Positions 29,351 to 55,216 of a stretch of 64,000 nt of DNA are shown one piece after another; position 1 is the first letter of the stretch; each line of letters opens with the position of its first letter. The notes below the pieces were generated by a model. The model had not been told where the DNA came from, did not search any database, and saw nothing but the letters and a program-made list of their open reading frames with translations. This DNA comes from Podarcis tiliguerta (Eukaryota): NCBI GenBank assembly GCA_965153285.1, contig OZ229110.1; one strand, given 5' to 3'. Both the position numbers and the translations under genes were made by a program.

Positions 29351-32300
29351 TGCCCCTTAGCAACCCTCTGGTAGTGTAAAGTGCCCAAATACGGGTTTTG
29401 GACCCATCCAAGGGGTTCTCAGATCGGTGGGCTGGGGTTTTTATTCTCTGCTGCTGGTTGGTTTCCCTTTGCCTGAGGTATGTTAGACCATTTGCTGAGG
29501 TTCCACGCTAAGCTGGTGAGGCCGCAGCATCCCAAGTTTGAGCTCACAACGTCCAGTGCAAATACAAGAAAGGCAAAATGGAGAGTGGCTGCACACAGGG
29601 CTTGTGTTTTCTGCCCTTGTCCAGCCCTGTACAAATATTGGCGTCCCCTAATGGCTGTTGTCATCTCAGGGCTTCCATTTTGACAATCTTCACCTGGCAC
29701 CGGTCTCTGTTGACTGAGTTTAGAACTGAGACTGTCTCATTGCTGCTTGGCTTCTTAGCAGCAGTTTCTGCTTGACTCACACCCTTTGCCCATCTCCTTT
29801 CCGAGGGAAAACCCACCTTGGGGTAGATTGGAACAAATGGCAGTCCTGGGAAACCAGAATTGCCATTGGCTCTGATTCAGCTCGAAAGCAGGGGGAAAGC
29901 AAGGCGACAAGAGGAAGTGTACATGAAGCCTAATATAGTCCCTCAAGAAAGTTTGTACTGCTCCTCTTTGAGAGAAGGTGAGAGTGGAACACAAAATGTG
30001 TACCCCATAGATAATCATGTTCTGGTTTCACCTCCTAGATCGCCAGCTCTCCTCCACCCCTCTGGAGATTCTCCTGTTTCTGAATGGCTGGTATTACGCA
30101 ACATATTTTCTGCTGGAGATTTTCATATTTGTCTATAAAGGTGAGTCTTTGAAGGGATGATGTGTTTGGGTTGCCTGCAGAAGGGTTTTTTTACGCATTT
30201 ACCTTGTGGCTCTCACCTGAAGAAAGTGAAAGAACAAAGTGGATAGTGAAATTATTTATTTCTCACCTAGCTGCTTGAGAGTTCACAGCCTTTTTCAGAA
30301 CCATCCATGTCCCAGTGTTTGTTGCTTTGCTGTTCTCTTAATGCATATGTCCATTTGTGCACCCACTTAGGACTCCTGTTGCCCTACCCCTCTGCCAATT
30401 TGGCTTTGGACCTGATAATGCTTTTTCTCTATCTTGGGATTGAAGTGACCCGGATATTTTTTGGTGAGTATTCAATAAAAATGTTCTTACGAGTAGTGCA
30501 CTCACCTGCCATTTTGTGAGCATCTTTGATGGCACTTGACCTGAAAAGATGAGTCCTGGGGAAACCCAGCCAGATGGGCAGGATATGAATAAAATTAGTT
30601 GTTGTGGTAGTGGTGGTGGTTCACTCATCGATAAATTCTGTTTCTCCAACAGCAAAGGTGTTTGAGAGTAGAGTAGCTGAGCAGAGTGTAAATTGCTGAC
30701 AGTGCCTTCACTCCCATGATTCCAGGCCTTCCTAATTATTCTGCTGAACTGGAATAGGTGCCTCCAATGAAATGATGCCCAAAGGCTGAAAAAGGGGCTC
30801 TGTGGTACATTGCCTAATTCGGGAGTAGGTAGGAGGCAAGACAACATTATGCGGTTGGAAATATGAGATCCCATTCATCCAGTCTGACTGTCCTTCCTGA
30901 CCTGAGACTAGCTTATGAACTACAGTACAAATCTTAAATGCAAAATCCCATTCCTTATTCTCAGTTAAATGATTCTTGATTCAGGTAGATAGCCGTGTTG
31001 GTCTGATGCAGTCGAAATAAATATATATATTTTTTAAAAGTTATTTTTTTAAAAATTGTTCAGTCGTCAACAGATTTACCATACCCATTGAGTCAATCAC
31101 CCATCTCCTACTACCCTTCCGAGAAATACCCCACTCCACCTCCCATTATATGTAAGGTTCTGGTGACTTCTGTTTCAGTGTATCTGAAGAAGTGTGCATG
31201 CACACGAAAGCTTATACCCAGAACAAACCTAGTTGGTCTCGAAGGTGCTACTGGACAATTTTTTAACTTAGTTAAATGAAAACTGATCTCTGAAAAGTAG
31301 AGCTATTCATTTTGTGCCCTCAGATTCCAAATATTGTGGCTTTTATGCTGAAAAGGTCTATGCATTTTCTTTTTCATATTTTCTGTGTATGGCAGGCTCA
31401 AAAGGGAACCTCTGTCAACGGAAAGTGCCACTTGCTATCAGTCTGGCTTTAACCTTTCCAGCAGCAGTGATGGCAGCCTATTATCTGCTGCTGCAGACTT
31501 ATGCTCTGCGGCTGGAGGCCATCCTTAATGCTATCCTCCTCCTCTTCTATGCTGTGGAGCTGTTACTGGGTGTTCTCACTCTGGCTGCCTTCTCCAGGTA
31601 CTTTACTTCCCTACCATTATGGTATTTTAGGGAAATATTTTTTTATGTGCATTGATTAGATTTTGTTTCTTAAGACACTGACTGTATTTACATGTAATGT
31701 TGGGTTTAGTGCTAAGTGAAGTTTCAGGCTTGTGTGAGAGTCCCCATATCCTCTTCCTTTATGGCTGGGAGGACTTGGAAGGATTTACTTTCACTTTTAA
31801 ATCCCTATTTAGCATCATGTTGGAACCAAGAATCCTGGTTTAAAACAACAAAAGTCCTGTGGCACATTAAAAAGTAACAAATTAGTTATGACATAAGTTT
31901 TCATGGACTAGCTTAAGCTGTAATAAATGTGTTAGCTTAGCCTTTAATGTCCCCCAAAGACTGGACAATATTCAACCATATATCCCAGTGGGACTTCTGT
32001 GCCCCATGCCATTCCCAGAGCAGATTTAAGGGGCATGCAGGTGGGGAATATGCTCAATTGCACAAGGAGAAATCTTTCTTCTTAGCGCTGTGTTGAATGC
32101 AAGCCTTTCTGTTATACTCTCTGGAAATTGGTATACTGTAACTCTGATCAGTTTAAGAAGCCAACTTCATAACCCATAGTGTGAAGTTGATTTATTATGG
32201 TACTTACCAGAGTTTTAAACCAGGATTCCTGGCTCAGACATAATGCTAAGCTAGGATTCTTTAAAAGGAGAATTAAATAGAGAACATAAAATCCTGCTGA

Positions 32301-32680: not shown

Positions 32681-33716
32681 GAACCTTTGTGGGCTGCAAT
32701 GTATCGAACCGTGTGCTCTTCAGATTGGAGAGAGGCTGCATGAACCCTCCATTTCTGTGGCTGGAACAAGATGAGGTGTGGGTCCAATTCCCCCAATAAG
32801 CTGAAAGAAGGCGGCTCAACTTCTCATTTCAAGCTCATTCAGGTAGAGCACCATTAGCAGGGTCTCCAGTGTCTGGAAACAGTTTTCATGAGATGACAGA
32901 CCCACCCACCCTAACTAAGCTTGCAATCCTCCTGGAGGGCGCCAATTGATCCATTCCAACTTTGTACCTTGAGTAATTGACGCTCGCAAGTCAAAAGACT
33001 ATGGGCCAGTGAATGCCACCTAATAATCAGACTTTGCCTGCAGCTGGTGTGTCCTTTGAATTCCCCAGCGTGGTACATTCTAACAACTCAAGACTCTAAC
33101 ATGTGTGCAGTGACTCAGGAGGGCAGTCTTGCTCATCCTCTCTAATTGTTGTGTTACCTCCTGTGCCCTTTTCCTGAAGGGGGGTAGGGATAAGGGCAGC
33201 AGGCCTTGTGCCCCTTCCCCCCAAATCAGTGTTGTTATTGGTGTGTATTGACAATTTGTGATACTTGGTTTTCTACTGCATCCTTGGAATAAATATTTAT
33301 TTTTAAACTACTGTAGCTATGTGGAGCTTCAGACAAACATTGGTACACTGAGAGAACAGTGGTGCTCCTAGAAGCATGGGGGACCCCTCTTGGGGTGAAG
33401 AGAGGTACACATCTTTAAGATAACTGAGGCTTTGCAAATCATCCTAACTGCATGAAGGCGGTTCAGAAGGGACCTCATGGGCACAGAAAGTTTTTGCATA
33501 AGGAAATTCACATTCAAGGGTCCTGGCTTGGGTCTGCTGTAGGTAGCAGAGCTTTCATTTAGAGTTCAAGTATGCCCTGTGTGAGGGAGGATCTACGGAG
33601 GAAGGGTCATTTCCAAGAGGTCTAACACATGGGCCAATTGGGCATCAGTTGAGATAAGCATGAAGTAAGCCCACACAGAAAAAGTTTATTGGTGGGAAGA
33701 GCAAGGTCAGATGCTC

Positions 33717-36700
33717 TCAGAAATGGAACAGTGTTGCTCCAGATGCGTCTGAAGCCCCTGCCCATAGTCGGCCTCCTTGCTCAGCCACAAAAAACTTGTT
33801 GTTGGGTGCTTTGATGATCAGGCAGCTGGAGGATGCAAACTGGATGGTGAAATTGCTGGGACGGTCACTGTTTACCAAGATTTGTCCATCGTTATCCAGA
33901 GCCCAGTACTTGCTGCCTGCAGGTCAAGTGGCAGAATTAGTGGAAGGAAGGGTGAGGGTCAGGGAAGGTTAGAGGCGTGGCAAGACCAGCTCTTAGATCT
34001 CTCCGACTTTTACGAGGTAAAAGAATCACAGGTAATTAGGATATGCTTGTCATGGCAATACTAGGTATGGTTTAGAAAGAAAGCATGTATAAAGGGAAAA
34101 CATGACCGACACCTAGAATAATAAGAGTTGGAAGGGACCCAAGGGTCATCTAGTCCAACGCCCTGCAACACAGGAATCACAGCTAAATCAACCATGGCAG
34201 ATGGCCATCCAACCTGAACAGTAGTTTATCCTTAATTGGGCCTAGGAAACTATTGTCCAGGGGTCATGGAGCAAAACAAATGGCAAAGGGGGGAAAATAG
34301 TGATGATGCGCTCTTTTGCATTGTTTTGGTTTGGGAAAGCAAGTTTTGGCTCCCTCTTATGGCTACGTATAAACTAGGCTTGTTTTTATAAAAATCCTTT
34401 GATGGCAGCTCCCATTTATGAGTAGGTCATGTTTCTCTCGCAACACAGATACTAGGAGACCCCAACCCCTTGGAATATACTTAGTCCCACCTGGAAACAT
34501 ACTAACCAACTTGGAAGTTGTAGTAGCCTTCCTCGGTGAGCGACAGGCTGCTGGCAACATAGCTGACGCAGTTCCCTTCCAACTTCCTCATGTCAGAACA
34601 CAGACCCACGTAGCCGGCATCACTGTGCAGGACAAGCAGGGGCCGGTTCACCAGCACCAGCAGGAAATCTTCACTCTTCCCTGAAGGTACAAGGGAAACC
34701 TTTAGCATTGGCCGCACCTGGCTTTCAAAGAGAACTATTTTGCCACCCTTCCTTTTGCTCTCAAGAGGCAATCAGCTCCCAAGGGAAAGTCAACTTCAGT
34801 GCTAAAGATCAGGAGAAATCGCCCCACACTGAGAAGCCAGGCTGAGTGTTGTAACAGGGGCCCAGAATTCACAATGTCTCCCTCTAGTCTTTCTTACTTG
34901 ATTCAAGGTGCTGCTTATGGCACAGAAAGCTTTTAATGGCTTGGACTTCAAATACTGTTCTTCCCTTGGGTTTTATCCCGATTTCTACTGTCAGTGGCAT
35001 TTGCCCTAAAGTTCATTCAAATAACCACTATGGACAACAACTGCACAGCTGTTTCTGGTGGTGGTTCCCCCCAAACTGGAACTCATTCTCTGACTGCTTC
35101 CCAGATCATATTACAGAAACAATGTCAACCTACTTGGTATGCAGTTCTGGGGGCCAGGATTATATGCACAGAGGGGCAGTGTTTTAGTGAGTCTTAGGGT
35201 GTTTTTTTCTCTTTCATCCAGGCTGTATTTGTAGTGATGTTAGCTACTCCAAAGCGTAAGGAAGGGAGTGTAAACAGAACTCATTCCATCTTGCAAGAGC
35301 AAGATTATGAAAGTTTTGGTTGCTGATTTCCAACAAGAAGCCCTTGAGGTGTCTAAAAAGCCATTTCACAGGATGGGCTTAAGGTTGGCTCCCCATGTTC
35401 CAGTTTTATATCCAGGGACAGCTTGGTTTCTGTGCAAAGACTTTCCCCACATTATTCCTCTAGAGGGCTATCTAGGGAGTTAGTGGAAGGCTGTCGCTTC
35501 CATTCCTTTCCCCTAGAATTACCTAAAGCTAATTTGCAGCTGGCAGTGTGCAATCTCTCTTCCCACCCTAGCTGTGTTCACCTGTCCACACTGATGCCCT
35601 GGTGCTTGTAAGAGAAGCTCTCTACCAGTTTGTACCTGCAGCTTTGGGAATTGCCAGGAGCTGTCCATTGGGCCGCATGGACACTTGCTTGTCTGCTATG
35701 CGGAGACACACCTTTTGGTCTTGGTACTGGATGTCGAACCAGACATTCCTGTCCTGTTTGGTGTTGCTGTTAATACAGTCATTAGGACCCTGCAAAAGAC
35801 AGGATGCATTCGTTGGAAAGTGCTTTTTGTGTTTTTGGCTTACTTTGTCTGATAGAAACCTCCTGCAGCAGTCCCTTTATCAGCTACGTTCTGAGATCCA
35901 TGTTGATATATTTTCATTGGAAGGTATTTGGTGCTGCATCAAGACTGAGAATCCCATTGTGGTGGGTGACACAACACAAGAGTACAGCAATGCATGAGCA
36001 TCTCAATACCAGGGAGGTTAGTCCAGCAGTAGTTACCTCCAAAAGGGTAGTTTGGAGTTTCTAGCATCAGCAAGCTAGGGATGGTGGTGGACCTTGGCTT
36101 TATTCAAAGCCACTTTCTTGTTGACTTCACACTTCAAGTTGCACTATGTGAACCATAGCCTAGACTGAAGCCAAACTATAAGATTTCTAAATGGTATGTT
36201 AGATGTGCAGTATAGATTTTGAAGCACAACAGAAATCTGCAAAATTTCTGACCAGGGTCCATAGCAGATGGTGTATGTGCACACCATGAACAACAATGCA
36301 GCCAGAAGACCACCTTCAACTCTACTTATAAGTTTCATTTAGTTCAGCAAGTTTTACTCTCAGGTAAGTGAATAGCAGACCTGAAAAAGATGTCTCCAGC
36401 CCTCCAGGCTTAAGCAGTTAGCTTTTTCTGAAGAGGTTGTTCAGGAAGTTGTGCATTCCTACTGCACTCTTACATATTTCATCTGTGGCAGGGATGAGAA
36501 ACCTGAGGCCCTGAAGATGTTGGAGTAATAACTGCCAGCCAATGATCAAGGACAATAGGCATTTGAGCCACAGGTTCTTCATCCTCAGTGTACAAAAAAC
36601 AATTTTTCACTTTTCCACAAGGAGGATTGTGTATAATACCCTGCTTTGCTTTGTAGAATAGAGTAATTCCCCCCACCCGCACTAAAGTTGACAAAAATCT

Positions 36701-39700
36701 TTTGGAAAAGGATTGAAACAGCCCTTACTAACATTAACAAATAAGTCCAGGACCAAGAGCTATCTTCTGCTATTTAACAAGCCTCCTTTTATCAGTTCCC
36801 TGCTTGCTACATTATTATCCTCTTGATTTGCAGCCTGCCTTTCTGTGTTAATACATACACAGCGCAGATATATCTTCTTCATCAGGGGAGAGTTGGTGAA
36901 CACTTGAGGTGGCAAAGCCTCTACTACATCAAGTTTCAAGCTTAAGTCGTTTTGTTTTTTTGAACCAGGCCACAATTTTTGTGAATGCTCGCAGCCAAGT
37001 GTCGAGGATGCAGCTCACCCACCTCCTTGCTCACATTTAAAAGAATTCCTGATTAAGTTGGTGCGCCACAATCTGGGCACAGATGTATCCAGTGGAGGCT
37101 GATCCACTTGGGCAAAAGGGGCCCTGCCCTACCATCCTCACTCTGCCCTTGATCAGTCCCCACATTCTCACAACCAGTCGTGGGGTGGGGCTGCCTGTCA
37201 GCTTCCTCCCTCCTTAGTCTCAGTGTTGCCCATTGTAGAATATAGTCGGAAGGAGGTTGGGGACAAGACTGGAATGAGTGACTGTGGCTGAAAAAAGCTT
37301 GGGGCTTTCTGCATGCAAAGTAGGTGCTCTACCACCTACGAGCTGCCATCCTTCTCCGTAGTTAGGAAACATAGTTAGGTCCTGCCTGATCGCTGCTGTT
37401 CCTCGTAACGCGTGGCAGGCACACTCACCAAGGACATATATGCGCCGCTGTGGCTACGGAAGCAGACCTTCTTTGTGGTGTCATCAAACAGCACCTGGAA
37501 GATCTCTGTGTTGCCGACAGCCATAGCATTGGCGTAGAGATCAGCACCTGCAGGGGGCAGGGAAGAAACACCCTAGGTCAGCATTCCTACATATGCCATT
37601 GCCCACTCCTTGCAGGCTGAAATCAGTGGATCGTGGATCGAAAGAGGAAAACGTCATGCAGAGAATGGGGGCATTGTCTGTGTGTCAACTGACCTAGGAT
37701 CATTTGGACCTTCCTATCTTTGGAGACTGGGACGCGGGTGGCGCTGTGGGTTAAAGCCTCAGCGCCTAGGGCTTGCCGATCGAAAGGTCGGCGGTTCGAA
37801 TCCCTGCGGCGGGGTGCGCTCCCGTTGTTCGGTCCCAGCGCCTGCCAACCTAGCAGTTCGAAAGCACTCTCGGGTGCAAGTAGATAAATAGGGACCACTT
37901 ACTAGCGGGAAGGTAAACGGCGTTTCCATGTGCGGCTCTGGCTTGCCAGAGCAACGATGTCACGCTGGCCACGTGACCCGGAAGTGTCTTCGGACAGCGC
38001 TGGCCCCCGGCCTCTTTGAGTGAGATGGGCGCACAACCCTAGAGTCTGTCAAGACTGGCCCGTACGGGCAGGGGTACCTTTACCTTTTTATCTTTGGAGA
38101 CAGGCTGGTTTAAGAGCACAAAACGTCACGTGCAAGCTTCCCTAGCACTTCTGTCACACCACTTTTAATAAGAAATGCTGTGGGTTTTTTCAGGGACCGT
38201 AATCTTACTGGATCCTTGCTACTTCAATTGTATGTGCCCTTTTCCTGCTTCTTTACTTCTGCACCCTCTATCAGCCATCTTGCCTCTGAGGTCCCAGCAT
38301 CAGAATTCTGGTCCCCCTCAGAATGTGGACTACCACTGTGCCTCATTTTCTGAGCAGGTGGAATGGTCACAAACATTCCATCTCAATCAGCCAATCAGCT
38401 GCAGAGGCTTCACAAAGTGCAATGCAATATAGATAGTGCTGTTTTCTCCTGACTTACCTGGCCTGCAGCAAATGAACTTGTTAGTAGAAGAAGAGCGTAT
38501 AGAGACCTGGGCAGGGCTGGATTCCATGCTGAAGAGTTCCTCCCGTCCAGGTTTGTCCATCTTTACGGTTCTCATGCTACCCTCTCGCCCAGTCAAGTAC
38601 TTTCCCTCCTCATCCCGCAGAGCGACCAAGCCACCATGCACCTCCAGGGAGTACAGCGTTTGTGGGGTAACATCTGGCACCAGTGAGCCATTGGAAGCCA
38701 ACAGTTTGCCAGCCCCATTCCTCAATCCATACTTCTTTGCTGGAGACAAAGGCGAGAGAAATGAGAGGTTGACAGCAGCTTGATGTTTAGTCCTGGAAAA
38801 CAATCTCCAAATCAATTGTCTTACAAAGTAGCATCAGAGTTGATGCTTGTTTCACTGCAGAATTGCCACACAGGCCCACCCTGCCTGCAGTTCCAAACAC
38901 CAACCCTTTCGAGTTCCCTATTCCTGTATGCCCTTAACATTTCCCATTGTATTTCCCTTACCTAGAATCTCATATATCATTTGTACATGTGTGTAAACAG
39001 CCCCCTGTGCTTTGTTCTGATAGGCAAGTTGATGTTCATTGGGTCTCAGCTTTGTACAGTGTTGGTGGTGCTGACACTGCATTTGTTTCCTTGTAGATTA
39101 CACCCTATTTTTCTTGCATAGTTACTTTGGGGGTTTACGTGTGTGCTTGATAAAGCTAGAGGCCATGACCCCCAACCCAGGTATAGTGAGATGTGCCATG
39201 GGCACATGCAGGCTAAGATTAGGATTGAAGTCATGTTCTCATCTGCACTAACACACGCCTTTATCCACACTACATGTGTGTTTTAAAAACTGGCTGTATT
39301 AGATTCTTTAGCCTAGTGTGCAATTTCACTTAAAAGTGTGTGTGTGAGAGTGGGGAACCTCCAACATCAATACGGTCAGGAAAGAGGATTTGCACTTGGA
39401 AACTTCTCTGCACAGACAATTCCCTTTCTTGTCTTATTTGGAAAGTTTGCACTGGTGTCTAACTTACCAGAAAGTCTTGCATAGGGCAATTAGTAGTTCT
39501 AAGAATTACCCAAGCTAATTAATGATGTTAAGGAAATCAAAATTCCTGCCAGCCACAGTGACTTCTTGGGTAAACAGAATTTGAATTCACCTGGTATGTA
39601 TGGGGAAAATTGCCTTCTCTCACCATTGGATTCCAGACCTATTGGAGGAGATGCAAATGACTCAAACTGAACTTTTTCACACATCAATAACAGAGGACTA

Positions 39701-41589
39701 TCTTAGAAGGTGCTTGGGTGGCTTTTGGATTGAGATGTGTAAATAAGGCAGTGTCACTCAAACTTTTTGAATTAAGACCTTCCACTTAGAAACACTTTCT
39801 GCCTTCCCAGGCCACCCCACCCACCTGTAGCACTTAGAAATCCTCATGTACAGGTAAAATCACAAGCAGACAAACATCTGTAGAATAAAGCAGCAACTTT
39901 CTCACTGTGGGAGGAGAAAGCCTGTGACCAGTACAGACTTTCTCCATCTCTCAAGTCTTTCCAGGTGTTCAGACTTACCCCAGGTGTCTGCTCCATAGTT
40001 GGAGAGGGTAACAGAAAACTTTAAACAATCCTTAGTTCAGAAGAAGCAACTTTCTTATTAGTATGGTAGCTATAAGTCCTCATCTGCAACAGGAATTACT
40101 GTAAGTGTGTGTGTGTGTGTAACCCTACAGCAGAATGTTTTGCTTCTTTAACACGCTCCCCCAACAAAGGGGGGGGGGGAGATGTGTGTTACAGTATTAG
40201 AGAGAAAAATGCACATATCAATTGAAAACAAAATAGGAAAATGCCACCACCCACCTCTGAAATCATAGTAGATAGTGATGACTGATTCAGCTCCCCAGGG
40301 CATGTCACGGTCACAGCGCAGCACCCCCGTTTTATCATCACACCGCACATAACGCTTCCTGTTGGGGTTGTACATGGCAACATTGGGGTGCACAGCCAGG
40401 TGGAGGGTCCATTTTTCAGTTTCGGTGGCAGCCTGGGCAAAGCAAGTGACGTTCTCCTCTGCTCCACCCAGGTAGCGCTTGGACTGTTCATTTTGCAAGG
40501 ACACCTGCAGGGAGGGAAGGATGTCTGGTCAGCTACATTGCCCAAGACAAGAAAAGCAGGAACACTCTCAATGAGAGCAAAGAACATGGCAGAATAAAAT
40601 TCAGGTATCATTACACCAATTACGTTACACCTTTGGGCTTATGGAGTTGCCATGATCACCCAAGTTCCATTGTGCAACAGTTGTTTCCAGTTGTGCATGG
40701 GACATGGCTAGGGCACCTTGAAGGATACACCAGGCAACTAACTCTTAGCACAGGTACTCAAATAAGCTATTCAGACACATTCTCTCCCCTTCAACCCATA
40801 GTGGCTGACTATCATACTGTTTGGCTGACAGGGGCAAAGAGCTTTGGCTCATGTGACTGGCTTCCCAAGGAGACCATGGGGAGGAAAGTCCAGGGACATT
40901 TTGCACTCTTCCTGATGCACTTTACAGCCCTGCAGGTCAAGTGCAGGAATCTGCTGCCTGGACTTACCTGTAAGAATCTAGAAAAACCCTGCTTCTCACC
41001 ACAGCAAACTAGTCTGCAAATCGAGCTCAATCCTGCCCTCATTTCCGCCTCTTAATTGTAAAAAAACATTTGTAAGCAAAACAAGAGGCCCACATTTGGG
41101 CAATAGCGGCATAGTTTTGAGGCCCTATTGAGGCAACTTTCAGCATTGTTTCCCTACCTTCTGCCCTCCGTCTCACTCACCCAACCACACCCAACCCTCT
41201 TTGTCCAGAATTCCAGCCCGATAATATCGGACATAAGCTACACTTGAGAGATAGGATGCTTGTGCCTGGGTGAGAGACAGCACCTTGCCATCTGGATACT
41301 GATGCAAGAGGAAGAAGGTCTGAGGCCCTGGTTTGTCCTGGTCACAGGTGACTTTTCCATTTGCGTCAGCCGCCAAGTAGCGTTTCAGTGCACTGATCAG
41401 GTGAAGCTTTTGGCCAGCCCCTTCTCCTGGGCCAGCTGCCCCTGCTCCCTGTGGGCTCACAAACTGCAGTATCCACAACTGGCGAGGCTTCAGTTGCTTG
41501 CCTGTGGCTGCCACCTGGAAACGGAAAGGTTCAGCAGTCAGGTACCGGTTGGCCGCATTAACAAGGCCAAATTCTAGTGAGTATGTCAT
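33717..41589 (-). CDS. Divergent fascin-family actin-bundling protein (four beta-trefoils), 494 aa; not assignable to FSCN1/2/3
   Basis: Seven exons (minus): 41589-41284 (MTYSLEFGLVNAANRYLTAEPFRFQV..YLAADANGKVTC..PDGK), 40504-40255 (VSLQNEQSKRYLGG..CFAQ..EKWTLHLAVHP..RKRY..DRDMPWG), 38739-38458 (KYGLRN..VALRDEEGKYL..EELF), 37547-37429 (ADLYAN..EIFQ..KKVCFRSHSG), 35789-35636 (WFDIQY..PNGQL), 34680-34507 (LVNRPLLVL..GYVG), 33916-33717 (KYWALD..KAPNNKF..TLFHF*). Total 1485 nt, no stops or frameshifts, all GT-AG, Kozak ACCATG, AATAAA at 33690-33685. Colinear with fascin-1 along its whole length. Confidence 0.92.
34116..34216 (-). mobile_element. CR1 LINE 3' fragment
   Basis: AGAGTTGGAAGGGACCCAAGGGTCATCTAGTCCAAC is the reverse complement of a CR1 3' end; it lies in fascin-like intron 6. 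Confidence 0.65.
37728..38088 (+). mobile_element. Full-length Sauria SINE
   Basis: GGGACGCGGGTGGCGCTGTGG head, GGTTCGAATCCC B-box, ACCTTTACCTTT tail; 13-bp TSD TATCTTTGGAGAC at 37715-37727 and 38089-38101. Confidence 0.92.
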
Positions 41590-41966: not shown

Positions 41967-42241
41967 GAGAGCCAGTGTGGTGTAGTGGTTAAGAGCGATA
42001 GTCTCGTAATCTGGGGAACCGGGTTCGCGTCTCCGCTCCTCCACATGCAGCTGCTGGGTGACCTTGGGCTAGTCACACTTCTTTGAAGTCTCTCAGCCCC
42101 ACTCACCTCACAGAGTGTTTGTTGTGGGGGAGGAAGGGAAAGGAGAATGTGAGCCGCTTTGAGACTCCTTAAAGGGAGTGAAAGGCGGGATATCAAATCC
42201 AAACTCTTCTTCTTCTTCTTCTTCTTCTTCTTCTTCTTCTT
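41967..42241 (+). mobile_element. Young tRNA-derived SINE with long (TTC)n tail (Squam3-like)
   Basis: Near-identical to 16822-17068, with about 12 TTC tail units. Confidence 0.85.
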
Positions 42242-46952: not shown

Positions 46953-49900
46953 TCAGTGATGTCGGTCTCTTTCTCTGTCCCTGTCTCTATGTCGCTCATG
47001 ATCCCGGCTTCTTTCCTGGAAATAGTCCTCATGCCGATCTTCATTATGGACGACGTCTCGGTGCCTCCTACTGCTCTCACGAGACCGACTGGGTGATCTA
47101 TCCCGAGACCGGTGCCGTTTTCTGGAAAACAAAGAGGTATCTAGTTACTGGCAAGCTGTAACAAGACCCTTTCCCCTACCAAAAGCACTTATTCCTACCT
47201 AGCTGTACAAAGCCCAGGAAGGGGACCAGAGCACAACTGAGACTCGCCCATCAGCAACATGAGTCACAGTAGCTGGATGACTTGGCAATAACTGTGCCTG
47301 AAGCTCACCTGGAGGAGCTGCTGCTGGTGCCCATGCTGTAAGACTTGGCTTCAATGCCATGAAGACAATCCTTGAGTGAAGAGATGAGGACTCTACACCG
47401 CTCATCATTTGCGACACGTGACTGTTTAATCACAGCAATGGCTGTGAGCAGGGTCTCAATGGCATCGCTGTAGTCCCCTGCAATATAACAGAGCAAAGGC
47501 GGCATGGTAAGAATGAGACCAGGAGCGAGAAATGGCAAGAGGTAGCAAAAGCCAGCTCTGGTTACCTGCACTGGCACCAGACACAGCTTTGGAAATGGCA
47601 CTGCTGGAAATTGCTCGATTCCTGTTCATGATATCTTCAAATTCAGCTTCACTGACAGGAGGTGGCAATGGGCCCAGTTCCCGGCTGTAGTACACAAACA
47701 CACACCCATCACACACAGAGGATAAACAGCTTCAAGCAGAACTATGACACAGTTCCTTATTCATAGACATGGCAATTCAAGGCCTTTCCAAACAGCAATG
47801 TGTGGTTGACCAGGTACTGCCCCCCTCCCCAAAGCAGACACTAAGTAGCATCCTTTAAGAACCAAGTTGTCAGCTGTCGTGCCCTAGAGCTATGCAAGGC
47901 ATTTTCTACCACCAACAAGAAGGTGGTTTCATGTCTAGTCGAACCATCACTCTTTGCATAAAAACAAAATAACTAAGCCCCTGGAGAATTAGGTCTGCAG
48001 CCTTGCTAAACAAGAGGCTTAGCTACTGTTCTTTGCACTGCTTAGTTTGGATTTTTTTCTTCTCAGATTCCTGGGAATGGGCTTGCGCTCACCTGCTGTG
48101 GTTGTATGCTGCAGAGGTCTTGTTATAGGTGTCTGGCGGGGGCCCCATTGCTGCATTGGGTGGGGGGAAGAAGGCTGGGTTGAGGTGCAGCGCAGGTGGC
48201 ACGGCCCCAGGAGGTGGCACAGTGAGGTGTGGAGGAAGTCGAGGGGGAGGGGGCATGAGGTGTTGGTAGTGGATTCCTGGAGGGGGAGGGGGAACCCCAA
48301 AGCTTGAGGAAAGAGGAGGGGGTGGTATGGGTGGAGGTGGCAGCCCCATGAGAGGAAGCGCAGAAGGAGGGCGGTTGAAGAAAGGCAACACAGGAGGCTT
48401 CTCAATGCGTGGCGGCGGCACAGCATTCTCTGTCGGAGTGGCTCGGCCGTCTACCGAGTCGGAGGAATCCCTTGAGTGAGCCCTCGGAGGCACCCCTGTC
48501 AGACATCACAGAAGAGGAAAAGCGCTCAACACTGTAGCAGTTGGGTAGGTCAGTTTTCTGACAAAATAACCCTCTCCCCGCTTTCCAGTAAGTACACCCA
48601 TGTCAACCATCATGCCTCTGAATTGCAATAACACCTTGCCCAAATATCAGAACTCTTATCTCATACATGTGAGAAAAGGTGGGTTTCACTGGTATGTGCA
48701 CACAGATTTTTGGGTTGATTTGGGCAAATGTTGAGGTATCTAGAGAGATACCTTCCTGCTCTGGAACTGGGCATTCCCAGTCTTGGCCAAGAGACCTGTA
48801 AGAGCTCTCTTAAGTGTTGTGTGCTGAGTTGACAGAGATAGTTGTATCAGGCACTGATTAAGAGTCAGATGGACAGGCAGCATAACATGCTAAATAAATG
48901 CTTAACTTTAATTACAATTTACAATAGCAGTGTGTCCAAACTGAACTGAGAACATTTTATTTATGGTCTTAGAATGTCTTGAGTGTATTTTACACTGTTC
49001 ACTTTCAGTGAAATAAATTTTGCCTGAGCATTCAAGTAATACTTATCATTCATATAGTGCTTATAGTGTGTTCAAAATGCTTTATGTATTAGCACAGTAA
49101 ACTTGCTAATAATCCTACTTGACAGATCTTTATCGCAAAGATTCTAGATAGGTGTTTAGGCTGAAAAAGTGTGGCTTACCTAATATTACCTAGTAACTGA
49201 GCTTATAGCCAAGGGGAAATCGGAACTGGTGTCTATGTTGTTTACATCTCAGCCATAGTCAGTATGTTATATTATATATAAAGATATATTAAAATATTCA
49301 TTTTTAATGTAACTGATTAGAACATCACATACTATCACAGACAAATGTATTGAACTTTCTCATTTAAGGAAAAGCAAAATCAGGAAGCTTCAAGAGAAAA
49401 GAACGAAAATGTGACAGACAGCATAAAAATTAATCAAACCATGCTGAATATAAGGGGAATATTTGACTAACCCACTCTTTGGTACAGTGACAACTGAAAT
49501 AGACGGTGTTGTATCCAATGCTGCATGAACAGAGTTCAGTGTGTTAATGGAAGCCCACTGTGCAAACGTAACACCACAAATGGGTTATCATTTGATGCCT
49601 AGGAACTTGGAAGTTGACTTAATCCAAGTCAGAACATTTACAATTCTGCTTCTGTGATCGACACATCTTGTTCAGTATACTCTACACTGACTGGCAGTAG
49701 CTCTCTGGGACTTCAGAGAAGACTCTTTCCAACCCTACATGGCGATGCCAGGGATTAAATATGGAAACTTCTGCAGACAAAGCAATTGTTCCACCATCTG
49801 AAAACTGCAGGCAACAGCCACAAAACTGTACATGAATGGCCTTCTCACTGAGCTAATTCTCTTAACTAATTATGTAAAATGTGTCTGAAATTCTAGCTAA

Positions 49901-52900
49901 CACTATACAAGCACTGGATTATGCAAGAATGGTCTTCTTCAGTAAAATCACTAATTGGCTATGGTGTTATCCCTACTCCTTTCCTATTATAAGTATTCTA
50001 ATGAGTGGAAACCTGAACATTCTAACACTACACAATTATACAGAATCCTCAAGACCCATAATTTTGGGAGATATGCTTAACTCCCACTCCTCCCCTGTCC
50101 CCTGAAATAATGACCTCAGGAACCTACTGCTTAGTGAATACACTCAGCAGAACATTTGGTTATTTTAGTAGAATTCTTCAATAAAGTGAAATATTAAAAC
50201 CTAATATGCCAATATCAACTACCTTGCAATATATGCGTATACGTTGCTTTATATAAAGGCAAATATCAACAGGCTTATATACATATTGCTACTTTTAAGT
50301 CACTGAACTACTTCCTGAACACCTACTGCAAACTGAGTGTTTTCCACTACATCCAGAAAATAATCAACATTTCCATTCTCATAGAATACAAAATGTAGAT
50401 GTAGAGAAGTCTCTGAACCTTAATCTGTAATACAAACTGCATCTCCTTCTACATAAAATAAGCAACTGAAATAAGCAACTATCTGTGGAATGGAAGAAAA
50501 CTTATGGTCCTTGTGAGAGCAATATAGTTTTAGATTCATCAGCAGATCCTGACTAATGAATTAAACTAGATTCAGTTGTCATGAATACTTCTGGCTACAA
50601 TTAAAAAATCGACATTCTTAATAAATGCAACGTTAGAAAAACAAGGGGACAATACCCAAGTACTGGAAGGCAATCAATACTATCCACCATTGCTCCACCA
50701 GGCCGGTTGCTTGGCCTCAAAGTCAGAAAGCTTCCTAAATCTGGAAACATGACTCCTTTATTCTTCCCAATGAAGAGTTATTGACCCCAGAGAAATAATC
50801 AAGCCATGCTGACCAAAGTACTGTACTTAGAGTCAACTTTATTTTACACAAACCAAGATGGCAATAATATGGAAGGGCATTACAGGAAGTATTTACAAAG
50901 ATTTACAATGTCTGCGTAAAGCAAAAATATATTATTTCAAAAACTCCAAGTTAAAAAAAGCTGTGTCATCTTAATTTGGAATTTTAATGTACAATAAGCT
51001 CAACTATAGTATGTTATGAGATTTGATACATTATTTTTTAAAAATATTAAGACCTTTATTCAAGATAGAGAATCTAAAGCATAATTGAAAGAAATCAATA
51101 ATCAAAAGAACTAAAAAAACACACCATGGAGAGCATGTTGAGAAGATGGATTTTGAAACATATTGCGATCTTGTCCCAATGTGGCAAAATTAATTAATTG
51201 CAAATATAGCCGAGAAACATTTCAAAAGAAAAAAACCATGATCATACAATTGCAATGACACACAATAATTAGGGACACAGAAATCTGTTATACCATCACC
51301 ACGTGAGACTTGGTGACAGCAAGTCTGGGATAATCTAATAACATTCATATTTCAAACTCAGCACGTGTCTGAATTACATTAAAAATTCACTTCATGGTCA
51401 CCAAACGGAAGCCACTTTTAGGTTTCCTTTGTGATAAATAGGAGAGTGCAATAAAGAGAACTTCAAACGTTTAACTTGTGCATGTGTTTTTCTTTATCGT
51501 ACTGGCTTGTCTGCTTTACAGTTCGCCACTTTGGGGGTTAGAGAGAGGCAGAGTGTAAATAAAATTACTGAAAACAGCAAATTTGTATTTCTCAGGCCCT
51601 TTGGGCGAGGAATCACAAAGTGGTGGAAGTCATTTACGAAGGCCTTGTCAAAAATGGTGACGTGCCATGGTTACTGTCAGGCGTTGCCATTCACCAGCGC
51701 GACCTCCTAGTGAAGATAAGATAAGCCCCTTTAAGCAGTTTTTCACAGGGAAAAGCTTGATGAGGGCTAAAAGCAGCTCTGCTTCATCTTATGATTCAGC
51801 AACAATGACTGACCTTCCTACCACAGAGAAATGGACCACAGGCACCATGACACCCCGTGGAGATAAGGGACATAGGAGCAACATGACTTTCTGCACTGAA
51901 ATTCAGTCAATTTCTAGGGCAGACCATGGAGGCCATTAAAGCGCAGCTGTGCTAAAGCTAAAGGCTGCAACTCTATAGTCAGTTGAGACTATGACAGGAT
52001 CATACAAAACGGTGGATCCTAACTGTCCAGATTAATTCTGCAAACAACAGAGGAAACTGTCCTCTTCTCCACTTACTAAGTCAGATAGTACATACAACAG
52101 CATACCTTTCACAGAAATTGACAAGCAGGGCCATCTATTATGGTTCTCCTTTGCCACCCTGGGCTCCTTTGGGAGAAAGGGTGGGATATATGTTTTATAA
52201 ATAATAATAAATGAATTATATGACCAAGAGGTAAGGCCCCAGCTGGAGCATTGCATCCAATACAGGGCACCTTACCTCTTCAGGGCTCCACAAATTCTGG
52301 AGAAGGTTCAGAGAGGAGCCGGGGGTGGTCCTAGCTATAACAGCTTCAAGAGCTTAAGCCCATTCAGTTTCAAGGGTGCCTCAAATCATGCAACATAGAA
52401 GGGGATAATAAAATCTACTTAGGCGTCACTCAGCAGCAACAGAAAAAGAAAATATACATGGACACTCCCTGGATATTCACACACATCCAAATTGTTTCTG
52501 GCTTAAAGCTCTGCTCAGGTTTCTCTAAGACCTAACCAATGCCCTGTATTTCTGCCTTGTTCCCTACTTAGCAAACGCAACCCCCATCTAAACTTACTTT
52601 TTCGAGCCTGAGCCTCAAACTGTGCAAGGTTCTGCCGGGTAGCCAACTTCACTTCCACTTTATCTCCATTGAGAATCTTCCCTGGTAGCAGCTCCAGAAG
52701 TTTGTGGACGGAGTTCTCAGAGGCAACCACCACTTCTGCGTACCTGGTCACAGAGGAAAAAGAACTGAAGACTGTCAGCAACTTCTAGTAAGGAAAACCA
52801 TCTAATCCAAGACAAGAAATCTTCCCCCACCCAAGGTCTACAAAATGTCACTGCTATGTAGCATTGGTGGGTGGGACGGGAGGAAAAATTAGACAGGGCC

Positions 52901-55216
52901 ACACCACTCCCTCTCTCACCCCCCCCCATCCTCATCTGCTCACACATATGAGCTCACATCATTACATTTATCTCTCTCGCATACACACAGATGCATTGAG
53001 GGAAAACCTCCCATTTGTTCCTATGGGAGTGCCCCCCTCCAGCAAGGGGTTTCATCCCTTTATCTCCCACTGCAGTACTTATCCAGATGAAGTTCCTGTG
53101 CCTCTTTCTGTGATAGCTTGGGAGACAGAGAGCTCGCTCCACCAGGGTTTGAAATTAGCGGGCACCAGTCACATTTTGCAATTGGCCTTTTGCAACTTGA
53201 TAGAGGTGTCCAGGCGCCACTTTTGGTGCCTAGCATCTCCATCTGTCTTTGTTTTTTGCTGCTGCCCCGCTGCCAGGTGACCCAGGTGTTTGGCAGGGTA
53301 GAGAGGTAGCTTGTCTTTTGCTGCCACACTACACTGCAGACCTCCTGAGTCACCCAGCAGCAATTTTTATTTTTATTGCTGTGGGGCTACCTGGTCGGGA
53401 GGGGGGAGCAATAAAAATGGCCCACTACACATTTTGGTTTGGCACCCACATGGCTCCTAGTATTCCTATCCCAGTTTCTAACACTGCCCTCCACAGCCAG
53501 CCCAGGAGCCAAGAACAAGAGGCTGTGGAGGCTGGATGGGAATCCTCTGACGGCCAGATGTGGTCCACAGGCCCAAGGTTCTCCCATTCCTGATTTGATT
53601 GATTTCTCAGGCCAACCCCGCTGTCCACAAGCACAGTGTCATTAACAGTGCAGAATTTTCAGCTCCACGCCCTCCAAATTAAAGCTGTCATTAAGAGCAG
53701 CAGCAAATAGCACATTGACAAGGGATCGCTCTGCAGAATTGGACAGAGCCCACCGCCTTCGTGAATCACATATAACAAGTAGTCATTTAGTTTGAAGGGA
53801 GTGGCATCCAAACCGGACAGTTACAAGGACTTCTAAGGCCACCTTAAAAAAATAGCAAGAAAACCAGACTTATATGCACACCGTTATCAACCACACTGGT
53901 CCCTAGATCATTCCTCCCACAATAACAGCCCCTCATGATGGGTCCTTTTATGAAGCAGTCTTGGAGTGCTCACCCTTTGGACTGGCCATTGGCTCTGTTC
54001 TCAGCAAACTTGAGTTCCACCACATCATAAACACCCACAGAACGGATTATTCGGGTCAGCTGCTGGTCAGTTGTCCACTATGTATGAAGAAGCAGAAAAT
54101 TACATTATAACCTGAAACCTTTTAGAGAACCCACATCATCTTATATTAGTAAGAGAACTCATCCTTCTCAAGCTCCTATATTGTTCCTGGTATAGTCTAA
54201 AGAAGGAACATTTGATTAAACCCCTCCCACTACAGTCACTTTTGGAGCTGCAGATGTGTGAGCACGTACATGTGTGAACATGTATCCTCCTAGAAGATGA
54301 AAGTTCTAGACAGACCTACGTAATTGAAGGAGCAGCAGCAGCAATCCCTTTCCCAACACATACCACAGGTATTCAAAAGAACTGCATGCACTTAGGGCAG
54401 TGATCAGTCTACATACCCTAAATCATGACACAGCAGGCCCAATATGACTTACTCAGGTACTAAGAGATTCATTCATAGAAAACTCTCATGCCAGCTACAG
54501 AAAATTTTGTGAAAATGTCTGTATCATGGCGTTTTAAGGGCCTCAATTCTACTATTATCATATTTTCTGATGTATCTTAAATGTGTTAAATCCTCTTCTC
54601 TTAAAAGTTACCCTGCTAATGCAAGAGCATCATATTCTCCAACTCTGAGATGTGCTGCTTTTTAGCATAGTACGGAATACTTGCTGGAGAAAATTCATCC
54701 ACAGTTGCTGCAGCTTATTTATTTGAAGCCACTGTTGAGTCTTTGAGAAAAGCAGGGTAAAAATGTCCTAAATAGAGCAATGTGTCATAACGAACAATGC
54801 TTCTAGTTATTTATCCAATGTGTTGTGAGGACTGAGGGTGGCAAGCAGCATAAAACCTACCCACTCACATGGGGCACTATACTCTATTAACATTAAAGAA
54901 CAGTAGTAAGATTAAAGTGCAGATGCAGCCTTTCCACACAAATGTTTTGTTTTTGTTAGGCCCTTTACTTTCTGCTCCGATTATGGAACGCACTCACCCA
55001 AGAGAAGCTGCCTACATAAACAGCAGCCCTCTTATTACGCAGCCCACTGTAGGTATACAGGATAGCAGGTGATTTGCTGTTTGGCTTAGGAGACTGCTCT
55101 TGCCGGTTTTCGGGTGGTGGCTCGGAGCTGCTAGGGCAACTTTCAGAAGGTTGTGAGCTGGCAGCTAGCACGTCGTCATATAGATCCATCTGGTCAGCAT
55201 TACTAAACTCAGAGTC
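46953..55216 (-). CDS. CPSF7: Cleavage and polyadenylation specificity factor 7 (CFIm59); first coding exon not found in the window
   Basis: Exons (minus): 55216-54998 ([26 protein letters not shown]), 54077-53974 ([20 protein letters not shown]), 52743-52598 ([19 protein letters not shown]), 48495-48093 (Pro-rich, [11 protein letters not shown]), 47684-47566 ([29 protein letters not shown]), 47477-47309 ([27 protein letters not shown]), 47121-46953 (RS/RD/RE tail ..RDRHH*). RRM + proline-rich + RS architecture. Confidence 0.96.

Follow-up and report, generated by a model that had tools for sequence, protein, structure and literature searches.

A seven-exon fascin gene on the minus strand

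The window analysed here is a stretch of 64,000 nucleotides (nt) of contig OZ229110.1 from the lizard Podarcis tiliguerta (GenBank assembly GCA_965153285.1). Between the genes for TMEM216 and CPSF7, its minus strand carries a divergent, intron-containing gene of the fascin family, which we delimited as seven open exon segments running from 41589 down to 33717, with borders set from three-frame translation and splice signals. Exon 1 (41589-41284; 306 nt) begins with the ATG at 41589-41587 and accounts for most of beta-trefoil 1, a Gly/Ala-rich insert included. Exon 2 (40504-40255; 250 nt) is entered in phase 0 and left in phase 1, and exon 3 (38739-38458; 282 nt), in phase 1 at both ends, covers beta-trefoil 2. 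These are followed by exon 4 (37547-37429; 119 nt), exon 5 (35789-35636; 154 nt), exon 6 (34680-34507; 174 nt) and exon 7 (33916-33717; 200 nt), the last of which contains the end of beta-trefoil 4 and the TGA stop codon at 33719-33717.

All six introns have GT...AG borders, each with a pyrimidine-rich acceptor. The first intron falls after codon 102, the second within codon 186 and the third within codon 280. The phases in which the exons are entered (0, 0, 1, 1, 0, 1 and 1) are mutually compatible, none of the seven exons contains an internal stop, and the summed coding length of 1485 nt equals 494 codons plus TGA. Exon lengths, phases and open frames thus bear out the initial annotation of this locus, made from the DNA sequence, in which seven GT-AG exons were spliced into an open reading frame (ORF) of 494 amino acids (aa). 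For exon 5, we retained the acceptor TTTTGCAG at 35790, which is the one used by the RefSeq orthologue. An in-frame AG at 35754, 36 nt into the exon, would yield a product of 482 aa; we rejected it, as the pyrimidine tract in front of it is weak and the RefSeq protein does not make use of it.

The same annotation credited the gene with a Kozak-type start codon and a poly(A) signal. The latter was found: an AATAAA lies at 33685-33690 (minus strand), 29 nt past the first base of the stop codon, and a second one at 33301-33296 (minus strand), 418 nt past it. The start codon stands in the context ACCATGA, which has the A at position -3 and lacks the G at +4.

Orthologues in reptiles and other vertebrates

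The peptides of the seven exons follow one another along a "fascin-like" protein that RefSeq lists for Lacerta agilis (P0152), with 96-100% identity. Exon 1 corresponds to residues 1-102 (99% identity), exon 2 to residues 103-185 (97.6%), exon 3 to residues 203-295 (98.9%), exon 4 to residues 297-335, exon 5 to residues 336-386 and exon 6 to residues 388-444 (each 100%), and exon 7 to residues 446-510 (96.9%). An Ensembl entry from Podarcis muralis (A0A670HS48, here P0162) matches four of the seven peptides, that of exon 2 among them, with 100% identity. The same exons and a common grouping in the tree (see below) identify the "fascin-like" genes of L. agilis and P. muralis as the gene described here. 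The exons were searched singly, with two full-length orthologues, P0152 and the 494-aa protein of a python (P0148), standing in for the whole protein.

A HMMER search with exon 1 against 1.8 billion representative sequences returned six close matches, after which the scores dropped sharply to those of ordinary fascins. Word-index protein searches were run with a turtle orthologue, a frog orthologue and a stretch of 100 residues from the orthologue in Varanus (expectation value, E ≤ 10). Full-length relatives occur in some 20 squamates, in turtles and Alligator, in the frogs Ascaphus and Discoglossus, in sturgeon and coelacanth, and in many cartilaginous fishes; the searches with the turtle and frog queries brought the full-length orthologues to more than 30 species. 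We refer to this set of proteins as clade X. In the databases, they go by the names "fascin-like", "fascin" or "Fascin-like domain-containing protein", and the gene has already been modelled by RefSeq or Ensembl in dozens of species, a lacertid included, so that it is not new to the databases.

No mammal, bird or teleost protein fell within clade X, either in the HMMER search with exon 1 or in the searches with the turtle and frog queries. Zebrafish has been reported to carry only fscn1a, fscn1b, fscn2a and fscn2b. The initial proposal that the gene may have been retained in sauropsids and lost in mammals agrees with these searches in its mammalian half; a restriction to sauropsids does not, given the members from cartilaginous fishes, sturgeon, coelacanth and two basal frogs, and birds are without a match. 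The clade X gene coexists with FSCN2 in the turtle Pelodiscus and, at the level of the genus, in Lepidochelys (clade X in L. olivacea, FSCN2 in L. kempii).

Sharks and rays have two clade X copies, which within Carcharodon are about 56% identical to each other. The two sets of sequences are P0166, P0168, P0169 and P0179 on one side, and P0008, P0132, P0133, P0184 and P0186 on the other; copy B, whose stem is long, has retained Ser39 and did not turn up in the chimaera. A separate observation concerns the cluster of P0019 and P0138, where a Joint Genome Institute (JGI) metagenome entry called "hypothetical protein" turns out to derive from a mammalian FSCN1, whose first coding exon it continues into the adjacent intron; a beaver entry falls within the same cluster, and the JGI entry was left out of all analyses.

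A cassette exon in intron 2

Intron 2 of the P. tiliguerta gene holds a putative cassette exon at 39638-39591 on the minus strand, with an acceptor ending in CCAATAG and a donor GTGAAT, which would add 48 nt, in frame, and 16 aa to the product. This peptide also forms part of the L. agilis protein P0152 (residues 186-202), whose RefSeq model includes the 48-nt cassette, in contrast to the first gene model of 494 aa, which skips it. At this position, the long isoforms of Python, of the colubrid Erythrolamprus and of the gecko Eublepharis have related cassettes. To judge from these sequences, the cassette looks like a conserved alternative exon that would give rise to forms of 494 and 510 aa in lacertids. 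In an AlphaFold2 model of P0152 it appears as a disordered loop, with a predicted local distance difference test (pLDDT) score of 42, and such a disordered segment may serve to tune the fascin-like protein.

Family membership and predicted fold

The Pfam domain Fascin (PF06268) exceeds its cut-off score in each of exons 1, 2, 3 and 7 when these are scanned individually (39 bits for exon 1), and the peptides of exons 1 and 3 match Protein Data Bank (PDB) chains of human fascin-1 with E-values of 9e-18 and 4e-17, respectively. Four Fascin stretches are recognised in each of the orthologues P0152 (165 bits) and P0148 (184 bits), and the latter aligns without large gaps to residues 11-493 of human fascin-1. 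The fold was computed for P0152, the closest orthologue at the per-exon identities given above. The AlphaFold2 model, built on an alignment of 63 sequences, has a mean pLDDT of 91.3 and a predicted template modelling (pTM) score of 0.88, and Foldseek superposes it on crystal and cryo-electron microscopy structures of fascin-1 (3P53, 7ZAU and 1DFC) with template modelling (TM) scores of 0.86-0.92 at 35% identity. Only the Gly/Ala-rich insert of trefoil 1 and residues 186-202 are poorly ordered. The end-to-end alignment, the Pfam matches and the fold model together uphold the colinearity with fascin over all four beta-trefoils that had been read from the DNA, and by this modelling the predicted gene product is a member of the fascin family with four beta-trefoils, arranged as in fascin-1.

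The Gly/Ala-rich insert, encoded at 41410-41460 in exon 1, amounts to about nine residues relative to fascin-1. It is present in squamates, turtles and alligator, and its pLDDT values are 62-71.

Phylogeny of clade X

A quick tree was computed from 70 sequences and a careful tree from 46, the latter under the LG+C20+F+G4 model with posterior mean site frequencies (PMSF); P0152 served as proxy for the P. tiliguerta gene. The sampling comprised clade X, FSCN1, FSCN2, and lamprey and invertebrate fascins. Clade X is monophyletic on a long stem in either tree, with a support of 100 in the Shimodaira–Hasegawa-like approximate likelihood ratio test (SH-aLRT) for the quick tree and of 100/100 in the careful tree. 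In the latter, the FSCN1 clade (99/97) and the FSCN2 clade (100/100) both exclude clade X, and the invertebrate fascins (amphioxus, sea cucumber, abalone) lie across a 98/99 branch from the vertebrate fascins, clade X included. The careful tree leaves the branching among clade X, FSCN1, FSCN2 and the two lamprey fascins without resolution. Those lamprey fascins, P0007 and P0016, both fall outside clade X.

Within clade X, the two copies of cartilaginous fishes are sisters (99/98), and the branching order is compatible with the species tree: imposing a bony-vertebrate grouping costs 4.2 log-likelihood units (approximately unbiased, AU, test; p 0.31). Identity between a lacertid and a gecko or snake is 84%, falling to 61% with turtle and 45% with chimaera, always over the full length. 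Clade X is 33-37% identical to amphioxus fascin, as against 47-50% for FSCN1 and FSCN2, and about 37% identical to FSCN1 and FSCN2 (37% to a toad FSCN1). Among the fascins sampled, two changes are found throughout clade X and nowhere else, namely an insertion of two aa in a loop of trefoil 2 and a deletion of two aa after the motif YLT. Three substitutions are likewise confined to clade X among the fascins sampled: R389 to Q or H, W491 to F, and E492 to H, R or L.

Since cartilaginous fishes, sturgeon, coelacanth and frogs lie within it, clade X dates back at least to the ancestor of jawed vertebrates, preceding the split of the cartilaginous and bony lineages. That it has been under constraint can be argued indirectly from the intact full-length orthologues distributed across some 450 million years. 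The seven-exon gene, the 100/100 clade and the spread from sharks to reptiles agree with the early interpretation of the locus, by which it is an old fascin paralogue with introns and no retrocopy. A position nested within FSCN1, FSCN2 or FSCN3, with no other copy of that gene in the genome, had been named beforehand as the outcome that would speak for a mere translocation. As regards FSCN1 and FSCN2, both trees place clade X outside these two groups, and turtles have the clade X gene and FSCN2. These phylogenies set clade X apart from both FSCN1 and FSCN2.

Actin-binding residues and predicted function

Human fascin-1 (PDB 1DFC, 3LLP, 3P53 and 8VO5) likewise consists of four beta-trefoils, in about 490 aa. 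The P. tiliguerta gene differs from it by an identity of 35-37%, the two-residue insertion and deletion, the Gly/Ala-rich insert of trefoil 1 and the different locus; moreover, a region that we take to be a single first coding exon in FSCN1 is distributed over three exons in the lizard gene. FSCN2 has the same family membership and fold and occurs beside clade X in the same turtles, yet it forms a separate clade with 37% identity to clade X.

By residue mapping, the basic residues of the fascin-1 actin surface that are kept are K41, R149-K150-R151, K241, K244, K247, R348 and K353. Conservative replacements are K22R, K43R, K250R, R271K and K358R, while K42 (to P), K313, K359 (to P), R389 (to H), R398 (to C) and K399 (to S) are lost, and the C-terminus reads F-H-F against W-E-Y in fascin-1. 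Ser39 is replaced by Gln in all 12 squamates, by Val in turtles and alligator, and by Ile in copy A of cartilaginous fishes; it is kept in copy B of the latter, in Ascaphus and in sturgeon. Ser274 corresponds to Cys in the lizard gene. Judging by the PDB titles, crystal structures of fascin-1 mutants exist for S39, K41, R149-R151 and K358.

From the fold and these residues, the clade X protein would be a monomeric cross-linker of parallel actin filaments, as fascin-1 is, in which the actin site of the N- and C-terminal trefoils is remodelled, so that actin may be bound with altered geometry or affinity. Because Ser39 has given way to Gln, the lizard protein could presumably not be switched off by protein kinase C (PKC) at that position. 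We infer from the model that it probably cross-links actin filaments, without regulation through Ser39.

The locus and its neighbours

The Pfam domains of both flanking genes confirm that the fascin gene sits between TMEM216 and CPSF7. The last coding exons of TMEM216 lie at 30307-31655 on the plus strand, convergent with the fascin gene (Pfam Transmemb_17, 3e-15 and 2e-5). The coding exons of CPSF7, at 47305-55189 on the minus strand, are located upstream of the fascin gene in the same orientation; Pfam RSLD_CPSF6 matches at 47308-47601 (7e-24), and further ORFs there resemble the RNA recognition motif (RRM) and proline-rich parts of CPSF7, without a Pfam match. In human, TMEM216 and CPSF7 are direct neighbours.

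Two repeat-like features were seen at the locus. A perfect (TCT)12 microsatellite occupies 42205-42241, about 620 bp upstream of the start codon, and reads as poly-Lys or poly-Glu in mechanically called ORFs. In intron 3, at 37620-37900, mechanical ORFs on both strands resemble a tRNA-derived short interspersed nuclear element (SINE); ARAGORN and Rfam returned nothing there.

Discussion

Of this gene, the databases already have models; the literature searched offered neither a name for the lineage nor a study of it. Reviews count three vertebrate fascins, and our literature search found no paper naming or studying a fourth fascin, FSCN4 or a reptile "fascin-like" gene. On balance, we hold it probable that the P. 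tiliguerta locus carries a functional, intron-containing, divergent fascin gene of clade X, which is separate from FSCN1 and FSCN2 and most likely also from FSCN3, and that vertebrates consequently have four ancient fascin lineages.

Two other explanations can be dealt with briefly. An origin by translocation or recent duplication from FSCN1 or FSCN2 is suggested by nothing beyond a general family likeness, at about 37% identity, and we regard it as scarcely conceivable: the trees, in which clade X excludes the FSCN1 and FSCN2 clades with full support, rule it out, clade X is no more similar to these two than to amphioxus fascin, sharks have the same gene, and Pelodiscus, as well as Lepidochelys at the genus level, has both the clade X gene and FSCN2. 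Slightly less far-fetched, and still very improbable, is a pseudogene, expressed or silent, or a gene-prediction artefact in the lizard studied, where the locus is known here from DNA and the promoter and poly(A) signals are putative. Against this stand the seven open exons with canonical splice sites and compatible phases, the identity of 96-100% of each exon to the protein of another lacertid genus, the full-length orthologues in more than 30 species and the confident fold prediction.

The alternative that deserves most attention is that the gene is the non-mammalian orthologue of FSCN3, a gene known to reviews from its testis expression. There would then be a single ancient lineage, which lies near TMEM216 and CPSF7 in reptiles, moved to the neighbourhood of ARF5 and PAX4 in the mammalian stem and thereafter evolved very fast as a testis gene, and vertebrates would have only three fascin lineages. 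We consider this unlikely, while several observations weigh in its favour and against a fourth lineage. Mammals have FSCN3 and lack clade X, other vertebrates have clade X and no known FSCN3, and such a complementary distribution is also what orthology of the two would predict. Clade X is itself fast-evolving and divergent, as its low identity to amphioxus fascin illustrates, and changes at two to three times the rate of FSCN2 when the same pairs of species are compared (72% against 91% identity between two turtles, 71% against 84% between crocodilian and turtle). One chimaera protein in nr is labelled "fascin-3", and a king-cobra fragment "Fascin-3, partial". Furthermore, FSCN3 presumably has seven coding exons and shares with clade X a G-to-A change at python position 473. 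A separate reservation concerns the predicted function of the clade X protein: its N/C-terminal actin site has lost several conserved residues, and bundling cannot be taken for granted. Finally, the argument for independence of clade X from FSCN3 draws on FSCN3 presumably keeping the ancestral state at four of the five signature characters, and is best treated as a lead. FSCN3 is presumably without both clade X indels and keeps R389-G and the C-terminal W-E; if these characters hold, a descendant of the clade X stem would need to have reversed all four.

Other evidence speaks against orthology with FSCN3. FSCN3 is likewise divergent, faster-evolving and outside FSCN1 and FSCN2, with a reported identity of 27-29% to FSCN1. 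Its neighbourhood differs: the clade X gene of P. tiliguerta is flanked by TMEM216 and CPSF7, whereas GCC1-ARF5-FSCN3-PAX4 has been reported as a conserved block (PMC3759438). RefSeq and the Ensembl-derived UniProt entries come from pipelines that project human names, and yet they do not give the name FSCN3 to clade X genes. With the frog query, the search extended to cnidarian fascins at 28-31% identity without retrieving FSCN3. No FSCN3 sequence was among the matches of the exon-1 HMMER search or of the turtle, frog and Varanus-region searches, and the PDB matches were all to fascin-1; a protein atlas lists a cluster named "fascin-3". It seems to us rather probable that clade X is a lineage of its own, not the orthologue of mammalian FSCN3.

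With clade X as a fourth lineage, a broader scenario can be proposed, which we find plausible and somewhat favoured: the four fascin lineages of jawed vertebrates would represent the full set from two rounds of genome duplication, clade X would have disappeared separately from mammals, birds, teleosts and the majority of amphibians, and its product would be an actin bundler without the PKC switch at Ser39.

A fourth ancient lineage, if true, would revise the picture of three fascins and supply all the duplicates to be expected after the early genome duplications of vertebrates. Its product, a naturally occurring fascin that lacks the Ser39 switch and whose N/C-terminal site is remodelled, would be useful for understanding how fascin binds and releases actin, and the lineage raises the questions of which cells of sharks and reptiles use the clade X protein and what took over in mammals, birds and teleosts. 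Should the gene be the FSCN3 orthologue instead, it would supply the missing non-mammalian history of a poorly understood testis gene. Either way, the clade X gene merits a name and an expression survey.

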